Positions 9,301 through 61,655 of a DNA stretch of 64,000 bases are shown here, in pieces. The notes beneath the pieces were generated by a model. It saw nothing but the letters and a program-made list of their open reading frames with translations, searched no databases and was not told the origin of the DNA. Within the stretch, counting starts at the first letter, position 1; each line of letters opens with the position of its first letter. A program made the position numbers and the translations under genes. The stretch lies in the sequence record MK250029.1; one strand, given 5' to 3'.

Positions 9301-10512
9301 ATGTCAAATCAAGAACTAATAGAATATTTAACTGATAATAGTGGAGAATATAATAAACGTATAAACAGAAAATACTTAGAAATTCATGATTTAAACATAT
9401 TACATATATTATATAATGTATATGATGATCTGTCTAAAGAAACTCCCGTATATGAAATATATTACCGGTTAAAAAATAATTTAAAAAAACGACCAGTATG
9501 TATTATTTGTGGAAAACCAGTAAAATATACTTCTGGCCATTATGCAAAATTTTGTAGTAAAGAATGTCAATATTCAGATTTAGGTAAAAAAATAACAAAA
9601 GAAATAAAAATAAAATCAAATTTAGAAAAGTATGGAGTTGAACATACGTCTCAATTAAAGGGTGTAACAGATAAACGTACAAAAAGTCGAGCAGATCACG
9701 TTAATAAAATACAATAGCATGTTCGTGAATCATTATATAAAAAATATGGAGCATATGATGTTATGCATATTCCTCATATTTTATAGAAAATAAAAGATNN
9801 NNNNNNNNNNNNNNNNNNNNNNNNNTTTCCTTTACAATAGTTAAAAAAAGAAAATAGTGAAATTTATTAGAAAATTTCGCAAACATGTATTAATAAATTT
9901 GGTGTAGACTCTCCATTAAAGAATAAAGAAGTTAGAGAAAAAATTAAACAAACCAATATACAGAAATATGGAGTTGATTATCTTTTTAAAAGTAATATTA
10001 TAAAAGAAAAAATTAAGCAAACAAATATATAGAAATACGGAGTTGATAATCCATTAAAAAATAAAGAGATATGGAAAAAATCACAAGATAATAGACAAAT
10101 ATCTTCAAAATCAAAATTAGAAAATAATTTTTTAAATTATTTAAAATTAAAATATGAATCAGATGATATTATTACATAGTATAAATCTAAAGAATATCCA
10201 TATTATTGTGATTTTTATATAAAGTCCATTAACTTATATATAGAAATTCAAGGTCATTGGACTCATAACGATCATCCGTTTGATATTAATAATTTAAATG
10301 ACTAGTTAATAATGAATAAATGGCGTACCAAATCATTATCTGACAAATATTATAAAAATGCTTTAAATACATGGACGATAAAAGACGTAGAAAAGCGAAA
10401 TACTGCTATATAGAATAATCTAAATTATTTAGAAATATTTGGAAAAACAGATTTAAATAAGTATATAGATATATTTGAAAACTATATTAAAAATATGGAG
10501 AATAATACATAA
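9301..10512 (+). CDS. Homing-endonuclease-like protein (same family as 4724-6391), TAG-containing
   Basis: CIICG...FCSKEC, EKYGV repeats, YPYYCDFYIKSINLYIEIQGHWTH; frame continues past TAG 9715 to TAA 10512. Confidence 0.7.
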
Positions 10513-12648: not shown

Positions 12649-13356
12649 CTGAAATCTTTTAATTTTAAAAAAGAGTTGAATCCTAAAATATGGAAAAATG
12701 GAAAATTAAAAGATAACATAAGAAAACGCTTAATAAAAATTGCAAAAGAATTTGTTGAATCTACTGAATTAGATTTCATTCCAGTAGATATTGTTATCGT
12801 TGGCTCTATTGCATCATTTAATTGGTCAAAATATTCTGATATTGATTTACATATAATTACAGATTTCAAATAGNNNNNNNNNNNNNNNNNNNNNNNNNNN
12901 NNNNNNNNNNNNNNNNNNNNNNNNNNNNNNNNNNNNNNNNNNNNNNNNNNNNNNNNNNNNNNNNNNNNNNNNNNNNNNNNNNNNNNNNNNNNNNNNNNNN
13001 NNNNNNNNNNNNNNNNNNNNNNNNNNNNNNNNNNNNNNNNNNNNNNNNNNNNNNNNNNNNNNNNACATAAGAAATTAGATAAAGATGCGATAAAAGAAAT
13101 TGCTTCTATGTATATTAATAAAATAGAATATTATAACAGAAAATATGATGAATTAAATAGTGATAAATCTATTTTATTATTATAGTCTAAAGTTGATTAT
13201 TTATATGATTCTATTATATAGGGTAGAAAAAAATCATTACCAATTGATGGTGAACAAGCAACAGGGAATATTGTATTTAAAGTATTAAGAAGAAGTGGAC
13301 ATTTAGAAATGTTAAATAATCTAAAAACAAAAATATTTGACCGATTGAATTCTATT
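12649..13356 (+). CDS. Nucleotidyltransferase (Pol-beta superfamily), partial, TAG-containing
   Basis: VIVGSIASFNWSKYSDIDLHII and, in the same frame after the mask, GEQATGNIVFKVLRRSGHLEML; both ends masked. Confidence 0.75.
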
Positions 13357-17393: not shown

Positions 17394-18284
17394 TTATACT
17401 TCTAAAGCTAAGAAACCTAAGACAGGGTAGTCTGCATACTTACCGGTGTTGTAGACGCGTCCATCATCGAGACCGAAACTGCGCACATCGTCTTTATCGT
17501 ACTCTCTACTACTCCAATAATTGTTGTCCTCACTAAAACCACTACCTTTTATAGCTGTACGTTTTTCATTTATAACTGTTTTGTTTGCATAAATTTGATA
17601 TAATTCGCCAGGCATTGGTAAATACCAGTCACCGGATTTAGTACCAGGTGTTGAATATGCAACACAACAACATGCAGGTGCACAATAACCTGCATCAGGA
17701 TTATTTGTTACTCCATCACATATGTTCTAATCCTGATTTGTTGCTTTAGATAAACATTGTTGTGTATTCCATTTACCTCCTATATATGCAATTTTTTCAG
17801 TTCCACCCTTTACATTACCTACATCAACGCTATCATTTCCAAAATACATATCCACATCTTGTGGAAGTGGATTTCCATTTGCTGGTGTTTTATAATCCAT
17901 ATAATTTATAGAAACAAATCTGGCTGTTTTAACAGCACCCGTTGAATCATCACCATTTTTGAAGTTTTCAGTAACCTCGGGAATTACACAAATTGCAATT
18001 GCAGTGTTATTCACATTATTTGTCTATGCATCAAGTGTTAACTTACCATCTGAAGTTGAATAAAGAATATCTGCAACAGCAGGTTTCTTTTTACTAGATG
18101 AAGCATCCAATTTAACTGGTTCCATATTTACTGAACCTAACATCAAACAATTAGGTCCAGGATGTCTTTCATCTATAAATTTAGTCGTCTAAGACTGATA
18201 TACAAATGCACCATCTTTATGATGAATCTATAAAGCAGCTTCATTCATTAATTCATCAGTTGCAAACTATTTAATAAATTTCAT
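17394..18284 (-). CDS. DUF1566/C-type-lectin-fold protein, candidate DGR target (296 aa, five TAGs)
   Basis: Joins track ORFs 17727-18014 and 17394-17615; C-terminus GDWYLPMPGEL..IY.N...IN...YWSSREY...F.LDDG.V...K...VLGFLAL. Confidence 0.8.
17412..17528 (-). repeat. Putative DGR variable repeat (VR)
   Basis: 16 of 39 codons end in C; 54/117 bases G+C (46%) in a very AT-rich genome; located at the 3' end of a CLec-fold gene. Confidence 0.65.
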
Positions 18285-39272: not shown

Positions 39273-40031
39273 TTAACTATTAAAGACTGGTCTTATTGTG
39301 AATGCATAAAAACGTGGTTCCTATATTATATGTGGTACTTCACTTTCATATTTTATATCATTTGAAAAATATAAACTTTGTGCATATGCTTTAATGTTAT
39401 TTCTATATGTATTCATATATTTAGGATCTGATGTATTATAAGAAGTCCAGTAATTACCGTATCCATAACCAGAAAAACCTTCAGTAACACTTCCAGCAGC
39501 AGGTAAATATATAAATTCTTTATTACCTCGTTTTTTAGATGTTATTTTATAACCAGGTATTATATTACCATTAGTATCACACCATTTCCAATTACAATAT
39601 TTAATTAATTCTTCAAACTATTCCGGTGTTGGTATTTTATAATTTCCATTTGTTTCCTAATAAGCAGCATCATCTATATCTTCTAATTGGTAATGAACTT
39701 TATTTTTAGAATATTTTATAAATGTTTTATTATTTCCAGATGGATTAAATTTTGTATAATCTGTTTTAAATATACGCTTAGTATGTACAGGTTCTGTATA
39801 TCCCCACTGATAGTAATTACCTGGATCTGTTTCAGTTTCTGCACCTAGATTTTTAGTACACCATAATGTTCCAGAAGGTAAACCTAAATTTACAAATTTA
39901 TAATTATTTGATATATTATCTATTATTGTAGTATTATCATCTAATATAATATCATCGTCTATATCATCAAATAAACTTTCATATATTGCGGTTTTAATAG
40001 ACTCTATTAATTTATTATATAATAATGACAT
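39273..40031 (-). CDS. Bacteroidetes 'VxLGLPSGTLW' / Fib_succ_major-like (CLec-fold) protein (TAG-containing)
   Basis: FVNLGLPSGTLWCTKNLGA..GNYYQWG, IPTPE(Q)FEEL, IYLPAAG, GNYWTS, C-terminal TIRPV after readthrough. Confidence 0.8.
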
Positions 40032-40119
40032 AAAAATATAAAAACTTTTATTATTTATTTTATTATAATGTACTTATTTTATAATAATTTATAATGATTT
40101 ATTCTTTTTACAAAATAAA

Positions 40120-41508
40120 TCAGAAATTAAACTAACCTACGTAGGATTTAGTTGAAAATAAGCTGGAAAACTACAGATTAAATTTATCTATAGAAAGTCT
40201 ATACATCATTTTAGACTTTTTGAAGAAGTAATATAGTTCCACTAAGTCATGATATGTAGGATGTAAATGAAATTCTTCCAATGACTTCATATACAACTGT
40301 TTAAACATAACTATGCTTGGTCTAACTATATTCTTTTTTATATCTTTAGATTTTATAATGTACTAATTATAAAATTCATATGCTCTACGACTTAACTCTA
40401 TTGAAGCTAAAATCATATCAGGTAAATTCAATGATCTATAAAGAAAGTTACCAATAAAACTCGAATATTCAGGAACAACCTTCAATAACTTAATATTCAA
40501 GATATTACATCTCTTCTATAAATTATTAACAAATAAAATTCTGTTCCATGAGTTATTAACTAATTTATTAAATCTCTTTCCTTTATCGGAATCTTTAGAT
40601 TTGATATTTAAATCTTCACATGAAATTAACTGACATTTGTAATATATAGCTTTGTTAACTATATTTTTAACTATCTATATAGTTTCATACTAACGTTTAT
40701 TTGAAATATATTTACGTTCTTTAGATTCAGTACTATAACCTTTACCTTTTAATCCAAAATCATAATCATTTAATTCTTTTATAGAATAAACACCGGATTT
40801 AACTACCTCAAATTCTGATTCAGATTTCCAATCAACTATACTCCATCCTATATAATTAGGATTAAGATCTAAACTAAGAATTCTGTTTTCAATTTTCTTT
40901 GAATTGAACTATGTATTTGAAATTATATTTTCATCAAACTGAATATAAACATATTGATTATCAATTTTATAAGTTATTGGACAATCATCTAGAACTTGGT
41001 GTTTGTATATATTTGTTAATGTTTTCTTTATATTTAAATGTAAGAATTTTGGTAAGTTAATTTGAATTTTCTTTTCTTTAAGTTTTAATGTAATGAAAGA
41101 TAAATCTTCGGATAGTTTGAATTTCCTGTTTCCATGCACAGATTTAGTTCCTGATTTCTTTTCGCCATATGAACATAAAGGAACTAATCTTTTTTCATTA
41201 AATTTATCTTTAGAAATTAATCCTTTTAACCTATTGAAAAAGTTTTTCTTTCCACCAAATATAACTTTCTATTCATTACCTACTAAACTATGAAGAAATT
41301 TCGCTTCATAGCTTGCTGACTATATAAACCAACTATCCAACAACTCTATATTATTCAATAAACATAAATCAGTTACCTTATTCTTTATACCATTCTATAA
41401 CTTATTAAATGCAACACGATATACATGATTATACTACTTGATATATCTACCAAGCAATAACTAATCATTTTGATTATCTATTCTATATTTAATTTTTATT
41501 GTTTGCAT
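40120..41508 (-). CDS. tnpB: TnpB/Cas12f-like RuvC nuclease (462 aa; 12 in-frame TAGs)
   Basis: Full hand translation: RuvC-I ILSLDLNPNYIGW, RuvC-II ISCEDLNI, KVVPEYSSFIGN, RuvC-III LPDMILASIELSRR; N-terminal VIFGG..GNRKF; ends TGA. Confidence 0.8.
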
Positions 41509-41673
41509 TTAATATTATAATTATATTCTATATTATTTATCTAAATTATTCTTAGAATTATCATCATTTCTAAAAATATTTCGAAAATATTTTAATTATT
41601 ACCAACAAAATTAAACAAAAAGAATATAACTTTATATAGAGAATAAATTATTTATAATATATGATTAATTATA

Positions 41674-42552
41674 TTGAATATGAAGAAATTATTTAAGTTA
41701 AATAATAATATTTGTGATCAGATATTTAATGAAGCACAAATACATTTTACTAAAAATTGTTCAAACAGATGTCCTTTCTGTATTGATGCATTTAATAATG
41801 GTGTTGGAAATAAAAAACCAGATATAGATAAGATCTTTTTATCAGTATTAAATATAAAAGATAAAATAGATGATATTGCAATATCAGGTGGTGAACCAAT
41901 GCTTTATATTGATGAGCTGCTACAATTAGTCAGAAATATAAAAAGATTTGCAAAATTAAATGTTACTGTTATTACATCAATGCCTATTACATGCTGGACA
42001 CATAAAGAAACATTTTTCGAAATAATAAAGATAATAGATCATCTTATTATTTCCCCACAACATTATGACCAGGAAATTGGTGATAAAATCAGAGGTTGTA
42101 ATTCATTTTATAATAGAGAAAAATTATTCAGTGAAATACCATATAAAAATAAAGTTTCATTAACTATTAATATTATAAAAGGTTATTTCAATGATAAACA
42201 AGATATTATAGATAATATAAAGTTTTTTGAAAAATTAGGTTATTCTAATTTCAAATTAGCAGAAATATTTGAACATGATGAACTTTATGTTTCCATAGAG
42301 GATTTATTAGGTTTTAAATTACCTTCCCCTTTTTCATATGGATGTTCAACAAAACATTTTGATCTATCTCCATATTTAGGATATAATTCAAATTCTGATT
42401 TTACTATTAAACGATGCTGTTTTTATAAGACTCATAAACAACATGCGTCTATTAATGATTTATTGAAAATATTAATCAGACCATTTTTTGCAAAAAAATA
42501 TTTTTTCTGTATTATATATGAAGATGGAAAAATTGTCAGAAGATGGTTCTAA
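41674..42552 (+). CDS. Radical SAM protein
   Basis: CSNRCPFC cluster motif and ISGGEP. Confidence 0.85.
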   Translation: MNMKKLFKLNNNICDQIFNEAQIHFTKNCSNRCPFCIDAFNNGVGNKKPDIDKIFLSVLNIKDKIDDIAISGGEPMLYIDELLQLVRNIKRFAKLNVTVITSMPITCWTHKETFFEIIKIIDHLIISPQHYDQEIGDKIRGCNSFYNREKLFSEIPYKNKVSLTINIIKGYFNDKQDIIDNIKFFEKLGYSNFKLAEIFEHDELYVSIEDLLGFKLPSPFSYGCSTKHFDLSPYLGYNSNSDFTIKRCCFYKTHKQHASINDLLKILIRPFFAKKYFFCIIYEDGKIVRRWF

Positions 42553-56986: not shown

Positions 56987-58282
56987 ATGATTTATTTAGA
57001 AAAAATGAGTAAATGGAAATTAAATGAAAATAGTATAAACGAATTTTTATGGACATGTGCAGGTGTTAATAAGAATATATTAAGATTATATCCGAGTGAA
57101 TATGCAAAATATGCAGGTAGTGGAGGAACTATTTTATTTACTGCTATGATGGCATTTATATCAGGTAGTTATGCAATGTTTTTTGTATTCAGTAATGCTA
57201 TATTATCACTGATCTTTGGTATATTCTGGGCATTACTTATATTTAACCTTGACAGATTTATTGTTAATTCAATGCATACTGACGGTAAAGACACATTAAG
57301 TTGGAAAAAGATTCAAACTGCAATGCCACGTATAATTATGGCTATATTTTTAGGTATTGTTATTTCAACACCACTTGAAATGAAGATATTTAATGATAGA
57401 ATAGAATCATAGTTACTAAAAGATAATATAGAACGAATAAATTCAGCAAAGAATGAATCATCAGATTATAAGACAATATCATTATTACAAGCAGAATAGA
57501 ACCAATTGACAAAAGATCGAAAACAACTGGTAGATGATTTACAGAAAGCATAGAAAGAACTGAAAGAAGAGGCAGAAGGAAATGCATTATCCGGTATTGC
57601 TGGGCATGGGACTATATATAGAGATAAAGAAACATATGTTAATCAATGTAAACAATCATTATAGGAATGGGATCTTCTTCATAAAGAACGGTTGACAACT
57701 GTATAGAAACGTATTGATGAAGTTAATAAGCATATTGAAAAATTTGAAGGTAAAATAGATGGTTTAAGAGAAGATGGTTTCAGTGCAAGGTATGAAGCTT
57801 TTTCAAATCTTAAAGAAGCAAATAATTCATTAGCGATGGTATCATTCATGATAACAATGTTATTCATTATTATAGAAGTTACACCTACATTTTTTAAACT
57901 TATTATGACATCAGGACCATATGAAGANCATTTATAGATAGAAAATTATAAAATAACAGCATATGTTACTAAAGAGAAAAATGGTCTTGATACAGAATTA
58001 AAAATAGATGATTATAATAATAAAGAAAAATTAAAAGCTGTTATTAAACAAGATGAACCTATTATTGATGTAACAGATGTATCAGTAAAACCTATTGTAT
58101 ATTCAGCTATATAGTCATTAACATTAGAATCAGAACAAGAACCTGAAGAAGTTCCATATATAAAGTCTAATACATCTATTATAACAACACCTNTTGCAAC
58201 AAAGAAATTAGAATTTAAGAAAAATGAGAAAGGACAAATTATGTTAGATTTCTCATCAAGACCTAAAAAATTAAATAAATGA
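56987..58282 (+). CDS. DUF4407-domain membrane protein (431 aa, TAG-containing)
   Basis: KYAGSGGTILFTA, IFNLDRFIV, ISTPLEMKIF, EAEG..SG..GHG..Y, IIEVTPTFFKL after readthrough; ends TGA. Confidence 0.8.
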
Positions 58283-61562: not shown

Positions 61563-61655
61563 ATTATAATAGTGTAGCGGTTCGCACGCCCGTTGGTAAA
61601 ACGGGAAGGGTTTATGTTTGAAAGCATATTAGGGGTTCGACTCCCGCTTATAAAC
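61563..61655 (+). tRNA. Degenerate class II tRNA, nominal Tyr(GTA)
   Basis: D stem GTGT/GCAC, anticodon stem CCCGT-TGGTAAA-ACGGG, variable hairpin, GGG-TTCGACT-CCC; G33, weak T stem, 6-bp all-AT acceptor. Confidence 0.45.

Follow-up and report, generated by a model that had tools for sequence, protein, structure and literature searches.

A probable non-autonomous IS607-family element with a TAG-recoded tnpB and a predicted omega-RNA in Prevotella phage Lak-C1

What kind of genetic unit occupies the region around positions 40035-41508 of a 64,000-nucleotide (nt) stretch of sequence record MK250029.1? The stretch, called the window here, corresponds to record positions 476218-540217 of Prevotella phage Lak-C1 and was placed via a 3.2-kb stretch of 100% identity. 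The original prediction, made from the letters alone, proposed a solo RNA-guided nuclease of the TnpB/Cas12f type. Our analysis shows that the gene is the cargo of a discrete, multi-copy mobile element. This element is very probably a non-autonomous insertion sequence of the IS607 family in Lak-C1, composed of tnpB and a predicted omega-RNA, lacking tnpA and adapted to the reading of TAG as glutamine (Gln). It is not a new kind of system; it is a well-delimited addition to the IS607-family TnpB/omega-RNA elements.

The recoded gene and the element that carries it

Read with translation table 11, positions 40035-41508 give fragments only, each of at most 76 amino acids (aa). When TAG is taken as sense, one open frame appears on the minus strand at 40120..41508, encoding 462 aa with 12 in-frame TAG codons and ending at TGA, which is the concealed frame described in the original prediction. 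With TAG read as Gln, in-frame TAG is found in about 30 of the 83 listed open reading frames (ORFs) of at least 100 aa in the window, whose GC content is 24%. Two tRNAs with a CUA anticodon are encoded by a near relative, the megaphage genome G001 (553,716 bp). An alignment of 84 family members shows that Gln occurs in TAG-free homologues at 4.4 times the background in the TAG columns of the recoded copies, and it prevails at residues 25 and 382, the two best-conserved of these columns. The TAG-containing ORFs of the window, the CUA tRNAs of G001 and the Gln enrichment thus argue that TAG is read as sense, and the tnpB of the element is, judged from its sequence, written in the TAG=Gln code of the phage. 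In a FastTree tree the recoded copies group together, yet with at least three code switches; the label 'standard' in this tree says no more than that tnpB has no TAG, and no inference about origin is drawn from it.

The tRNA genes of G001 (L149:6446-6518; L152:11810-11884 and 12719-12791) include, besides the two with CUA, one with a UUA anticodon that would read TAA. None of the tnpB copies shows an in-frame TAA. A 74-75% paralogue, which lies at G001:348696-350081 (copy L002) and at 62751-64130 of the Lak-C1 record (copy L178), has a single in-frame TGA at the position of a conserved Trp codon in both genomes. No such TGA interrupts the copy that another Lak assembly has at this site (L171). 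Either the two genomes share a nonsense mutation or TGA is occasionally read through.

The limits of the element are given by empty sites and independent copies. An exact empty site with flanks 99% identical is found in Lak-A1 and Lak-A2, and in G001 both flanks of the window copy are also contiguous. The empty alleles that had been proposed as a check therefore exist, and together with the independent copies they set the ends at 40066-41654. The element is located at 40066..41656 (-), with 1589 bp of inserted DNA (40066-41654) and the dinucleotide TA at both junctions (40066-67 and 41655-56). The left limit of 40035 given originally lies about 30 nt beyond the element end at 40066. The empty sites of Lak-A1 and G001 read CAC-ATATTA|TAATAAAATAAATAATAAAAG. 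Directly after the right end ...GTACATTA the flanks diverge in 12 different copies, and every member of the window subfamily ends in ...TATAAAATAAGTACATTA, followed by twelve different flanks. The left end starts with TAAATAATTT... in the window type and with TAATTTAATT... in the 75% type. A comparison of the ends with the copies and the empty sites reveals neither terminal inverted repeats nor a duplicated target; both junctions and the empty site have one TA dinucleotide in common. A 7-nt junction 'duplication' (TTATAAT) was considered and rejected, since independent copies show the true end ...ACATTA and the overlap consists of the target motif and the TA core.

The 146 nt between the gene and the left end (41509..41654, minus strand) are non-coding and include the motif TTTAGATAAATAA at 41533-41545, which in autonomous relatives is found between tnpA and tnpB. 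Directly 5' of the left end lies ATATTA in gene orientation (41655..41660, minus strand), the candidate target-adjacent motif (TAM) and insertion target, whose last two bases form the TA crossover core. Of eight independent sites, six have ATATTA as their 5' flank; the other two have ATGTTA and TATATA. Given the window composition, such a preference has a chance probability of about 1e-14. ATATTA is thus likely the TAM, with a predicted role in recognition. The TAM of ISDra2 is TTGAT.

Five tnpB copies are found in Lak-C1, four full copies and remnants in G001 and up to six in other large phage contigs; the window itself holds no second copy. In other assemblies, copies 96-99% identical to that of the window occupy at least three other sites, and contigs of RNA libraries from other samples diverge from the window at 40060-40065. 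The element has moved recently, because near-identical copies stand at other sites and a divergence at 40060 is seen in an RNA-library contig of another sample. When viral contigs were scanned for exact matches to two left-end sequences, G001 only, or nothing, was returned. In G001, weak matches to the omega-RNA model described below (E 1e-6 to 0.02) at 459560-459697, 449174-449321 and 122433-122582, one of them beside a broken tnpB fragment, are decayed remnants of further insertions. L002 and L171 share the 5' flank and the element, and in G001 the common 3' flank is set off from the right end by about 190 additional bases, which is a second small indel beside the element.

The link to IS607 comes from relatives. 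In more than 20 related loci an ORF of about 200 aa ends 1-55 nt upstream of tnpB and scores 157-174 bits on the NCBIfam model NF033518 'IS607 family transposase' (cut-off 110). IS607 has no inverted repeats or duplications, and its strand exchange takes place over a dinucleotide identical in the ends and the target, which is GG in IS607 (PMC6188088). The TA core observed here fits this scheme. Like IS607 of Helicobacter pylori and ISFba1, whose right-end element RNA (reRNA) is derived from RAGATH-18 (PDB 8iaz), the family has a serine-recombinase partner and a predicted guide RNA at the right end. Unlike in those systems, the core of the window element is TA instead of GG and its scaffold has no Rfam match; its protein differs from IS607-family TnpB by the absence of the zinc finger, about 80 extra C-terminal residues and the TAG=Gln code.

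As noted originally for the surroundings of the gene, tnpA is absent from the window copy, and it is absent from the whole window as well. Lak-C1 and Lak-A1 each contain one tnpA with 6-7 TAG codons, which adjoins a tnpB copy of 64% identity; that of Lak-C1 is located at record positions 17474-18076, about 17.5 kb past the end of the window on the circular record. Since relatives carry tnpA upstream and the window copy does not, the latter is probably a non-autonomous derivative. The description as a 'solo' orphan nuclease is therefore replaced by that of the cargo of a bounded, multi-copy element, with an IS607 tnpA elsewhere in the same genome.

The TnpB protein and its relatives

The catalytic motifs of the RuvC domain are SLDLN (D214), CEDL (E298) and LPDM (D364). 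None of these acidic residues varies among 49 relatives at 34-79% identity, and this triad and 25 further columns are at least 90% conserved. By this conservation, the protein is clearly under purifying selection. In ISDra2 TnpB the corresponding D-E-D residues are at 191/278/361, close to 214/298/364 here. Between E298 and D364 a single cysteine (C334) is found, which is not conserved, and a CxxC pair is absent. A loop of 16 residues between RuvC-II and RuvC-III occupies the place of the zinc finger (C4/TNB in TnpB, CCCC in Cas12f). Both the intact triad and the missing zinc finger had been predicted correctly.

An AlphaFold2 model based on the alignment of relatives has a mean predicted local distance difference test score of 90. 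A Foldseek search with this model against the PDB finds AsCas12f, OsCas12f, CnCas12f, Cas12k, ISFba1 TnpB and ISDra2 TnpB with E values of 1e-9 to 1e-5, the best matches being Cas12f enzymes. The match extends from residue 1 to about residue 400, and the RuvC resolvase fold is aligned to residues 208-385 with a root-mean-square deviation of 2.9 Å. In the secondary structure of the model, D214 closes strand 1, E298 closes strand 4 and D364 opens the helix after strand 5, which are the canonical places. Residues 400-462 are outside every structural match, and their coding DNA overlaps the predicted omega-RNA. According to the model, the protein has the TnpB/Cas12f fold with a WED/REC/RuvC architecture, an intact D-E-D RuvC triad and no zinc finger. 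A match to STING in a single-sequence PDB search was judged to be due to chance, and a phmmer search with residues 300-400 gave chance matches only and did not aid the RuvC-III alignment.

With Cas12f enzymes as the best structural matches, and with compact type V systems known in huge phages (PMC12607003), the protein could be read as a CRISPR-associated miniature effector that takes its CRISPR RNAs from an array elsewhere in the phage. The 64-kb window contains no CRISPR-like array, as already stated in the original prediction. Furthermore, the gene occurs in several copies and has precise empty sites, an IS607 tnpA flanks its relatives, and the conserved scaffold ends at the element boundary in the way omega-RNAs do. 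We consider such an effector very improbable.

The correctly translated protein scores 23.2 bits on TIGR01766 (cut-off 32) and 14.2 bits on TIGR01765 (cut-off 47.25), and a search of PHROGs with it returns no match. Together with the unannotated GenBank records of the Lak phages, these sub-threshold scores on the NCBIfam TnpB models bear out the expectation that standard annotation would miss the gene. The family is large, with more than 3,000 matches in a 90%-clustered collection, many of them on contigs of 0.3-0.55 Mb, and 960 clusters at 50% identity. Its database members are unnamed or carry at most the Pfam name PF27229 SSO2105_N (queried via a database relative). TAG-free members are present in many other large phage contigs. 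The proposal that the nuclease is locked to its phage is correct only in part, as the family also occurs TAG-free in those contigs and, as ISCaje4, in Campylobacter phages.

Among named relatives, the closest is ISCaje4 TnpB from Campylobacter phage CP220 (NC_027997.1), with 42.7% identity over residues 3-462. ISCaje4 is likewise phage-borne and of similar size (1714 bp annotated), and its 3' end also matches the omega-RNA model (L046). Its tnpB is preceded by a serine-recombinase remnant, annotated as a truncated resolvase-like transposase. Unlike the window copy, ISCaje4 uses the standard code, has a TAG-free gene and belongs to a different host clade. Its record is filed under IS200/IS605, and ends, TAM and RNA are undescribed there.

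In ISDra2 TnpB and Cas12f, RuvC-II and RuvC-III are separated by a CCCC zinc finger that the window protein lacks. Some TnpB branches, virus-enriched ones included, are known to have lost the C4 zinc finger (Altae-Tran et al. 2023, PMC10691335), so its absence does not disqualify the protein as a TnpB. In RIIIr-4, the largest zinc-finger-less TnpB clade and a virus-enriched one, the RuvC-III Asp is replaced by His (PMC10691335). Compared with this published description, the window family differs in its invariant D364. The original prediction had pointed to compact variants without zinc finger as being of tool interest. The zinc finger is indeed absent, but such TnpB branches are already described and 462 aa is not unusually compact; the novelty of the loss was overstated. 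TnpB genes in phages, crAss-like phages included, were noted earlier in the literature, and our literature search found no paper tying Lak phages to TnpB or IS607.

The predicted omega-RNA and its guide

The scaffold of the predicted omega-RNA comprises 154 nt at 40066..40219 (-). It shares the last 33 codons and the stop codon with tnpB and extends as far as the right end of the element. In the last ~100 nt of the ORF, nucleotide conservation is far above that expected from the protein identity of 55-60%. When 17 copies in a plain MAFFT alignment are folded with RNAalifold, two hairpins and a nine-pair long-range helix result, and this helix links the stretch following UUUUCUAG with that directly ahead of the terminal ACAUUA. 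In window coordinates, all on the minus strand, stem S1 is at 40219-40194, S2 at 40193-40171, S3 at 40153-40130 and S4 at 40122-40095, the long-range stem S5 pairs 40163-40155 with 40080-40072, and the 3' tail ACAUUA is at 40071-40066. S3 is the palindrome CCTACGTAGG and S4 the GATTTATT/AATAAATC hairpin, both of which had been pointed out in the original prediction and are stems of the conserved structure.

The palindrome hairpin was added by hand before the pairs were counted, and the counted stems are S1, S2, S3 and S5. Among the 17 copies 92.6% of the cells are paired, compared with 26-45% when the partners are slid by 1-3 columns. Changes on both sides of a pair number 18, against 2-8 in the slid controls, and the covariation score is reached by none of 500 shuffles. 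S4 lies outside the counted structure, and compensatory changes in it are seen by eye in three copies. The minimum-free-energy fold of the window sequence alone has the same five stems (-30.3 kcal/mol, z -3.9). A covariance model built on the 17-copy alignment hits nearly all tnpB copies of the family once each, at their 3' ends; in the window it gives a single match (40060-40259) and no second omega-RNA. Rfam at a permissive threshold returns no family, and no curated omega-RNA or RAGATH family is matched. These data predict that the 3' 154 nt are an omega-RNA, in line with the expectation of a structured RNA at this position. The TAG codon of Q446 falls in the near-invariant CUGUAG in the 3' strand of S2 (window 40171-40178), so that RNA constraint and reassigned codon coincide; a copy with no in-frame TAG (L104) has CUGAAG there.

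Could the 3' structure be something other than a guide RNA? It might act at the DNA or transcript level in transposition or expression, for instance as a terminator, an element that stabilises the mRNA or an end to which the recombinase binds, with TnpB as inactive baggage. The ends of IS607 do contain recombinase-binding repeats (PMC6188088), and the RNA-library contigs give neither strand nor ends. The compensatory changes in four helices, one of them long-range, indicate a folded single strand. The IS607 recombinase works on duplex DNA. In addition, TnpB is under clear purifying selection, and in the solved complexes of TnpB and Cas12f the layout is the same, with a scaffold that overlaps the 3' end of the gene. 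An origin of the structure apart from a guide is hence unlikely. ISDra2 (IS200/IS605 family, PDB 8h1j/8exa) and Cas12f share this overlap; unlike the window element, ISDra2 has a Y1 transposase partner and Cas12f has a CRISPR array.

The 3' end of the scaffold coincides with the element boundary at which the flanks diverge. The predicted guide is located beyond it at 40046..40065 (-), outside the element, and in gene orientation this 3' flank reads TAATAAAATAAATAATAAAA. It is identical in the Lak-A1 empty site, and the Lak-A-type empty allele matches the flank of the window for at least 45 nt. That the flank past the scaffold serves as guide is inferred from the TnpB paradigm. Host-DNA targeting, one of the roles suggested originally, finds no support, as sister phages carry the match to the predicted guide in their empty site.

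Proposed mechanism and genomic setting

The order of TAM, left end, tnpB, overlapping scaffold, right end and flank guide matches, by analogy, the layout of characterised TnpB systems. Beyond the fold, the ends and the RNA structure, every step proposed here is an inference. With its 12 TAG codons, the tnpB mRNA would be translated only in cells where TAG is read as Gln, that is, where the suppressor tRNA of the phage is active. TnpB would bind the scaffold cut from its own transcript, and about 16-20 nt of flank beyond the right end would act as guide. The resulting ribonucleoprotein may recognise ATATTA together with the sequence of the right flank. Its target would be the joint that excision leaves behind, which is at the same time the empty allele naturally present in co-infecting Lak-A-type phages. 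If excised by TnpA, the ends of the window copy would form a joint reading ...ACAT-TA-TAAATAAT.... Cutting of the empty site, followed by recombination with an occupied genome, would restore or copy the element, providing both homing and retention. For insertion at new sites, a serine-recombinase TnpA would have to act in trans, with strand exchange at the TA core.

A further-reaching proposal is that TnpB and its omega-RNA are a homing weapon of phage against phage, which cuts the ATATTA+guide site of co-infecting Lak-A-type genomes and converts them or excludes their markers. We put this forward tentatively, as possible and rather doubtful. If true, the 12 TAG codons would confine the nuclease to the recoded, late phase of infection, the system would correspond to the homing endonucleases of T4, with RNA guidance and with a change of genetic code as its gate, and the zinc-finger-free RuvC with its TAM of A and T only would be a distinct engineering scaffold.

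The intergenic region that holds the element is short and divergent, as the start codons of the neighbouring genes are about 53 nt apart in the empty-site genomes. On the left, a 252-aa gene with 3 TAG codons (39273-40031, minus strand) has no family match; on the right, a radical-SAM/NrdG-like gene (41674-42552, plus strand) matches phrog_626 (E 1.5e-7). Such a divergent promoter region would suit a domesticated, nuclease-independent TnpB that binds or represses the neighbouring phage genes under RNA guidance and has no role in mobility, a TldR-like function with the triad kept. The lost zinc finger and the tnpB copies of G001, which has no tnpA, would agree with this. However, the catalytic triad is invariant, near-identical copies stand at different sites, the locus is polymorphic among sister phages, and the sequence at the guide position is mere local flank with no conserved target. 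Domestication therefore appears quite unlikely.

Several points weigh against the reading as a mobile IS607-family TnpB/omega-RNA element. The protein lacks the zinc finger (TNB domain) found in canonical TnpB, so catalysis or substrate loading may differ. The subfamily of the Lak-C1 tnpA copy has the right end ATTTAA, not ACATTA, so that mobilisation of the window copy in trans is putative. No autonomous member of the window copy's own subclade is present among the copies sampled, and G001 has four tnpB copies and tnpA nowhere in its genome. The conserved ATATTA could reflect a preference of the recombinase instead of a TAM. For the RNA, 77 distinct copies give 89.7% paired cells, with helices 1-3 paired at 91-98% and up to five pair types per position, in an alignment that was fitted to the model and so favours the structure; the MAFFT-based count of 17 copies is free of such bias. 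Contigs of four metatranscriptomic runs from three studies cover most of the element and, in three of these runs, leave the neighbouring gene at 39336-40005 nearly uncovered; these contigs show neither strand nor ends and may stem from contaminating DNA. A depth peak over the omega-RNA region in the same contigs was not used as evidence for expression, because the depth sums contigs of paralogues.

The analysis provides a testable anatomy for a TnpB family that is now annotated as 'hypothetical', comprising ends, crossover dinucleotide, candidate TAM, guide position and an omega-RNA fold backed by covariation. With about 960 clusters at 50% identity, thousands of copies of this family are found in huge gut and rumen phages. 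It also presents an insertion sequence in which tnpA and tnpB alike are adapted to the reassigned stop codon of the phage. Lak-C1 and Lak-A1/A2 form a natural pair of occupied and empty genomes for the question of TnpB homing between competing phages. The interest as a tool lies in the absent zinc finger and the A/T-rich candidate TAM; a length of 462 aa offers no advantage.

Elsewhere in the window, a 403-aa ORF at 9301-10512 (+) with 8 in-frame TAG codons, partly masked by N (9799-9825), matches a phage homing endonuclease (phrog_3339, E 9e-23). By its sequence it is a second selfish nuclease gene of the window that needs the recoded reading. The window contains 20 runs of N with 3717 nt in total, located within 4797-25909 and, as the two single N among them, at 57928 and 58193; they leave the finding unaffected. 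The sole tRNA of the window is a tRNA-Tyr (GTA) of 93 nt at 61563-61655 (+), and a 93-nt tRNA-Tyr is likewise present in G001 (L162:16229-16321).
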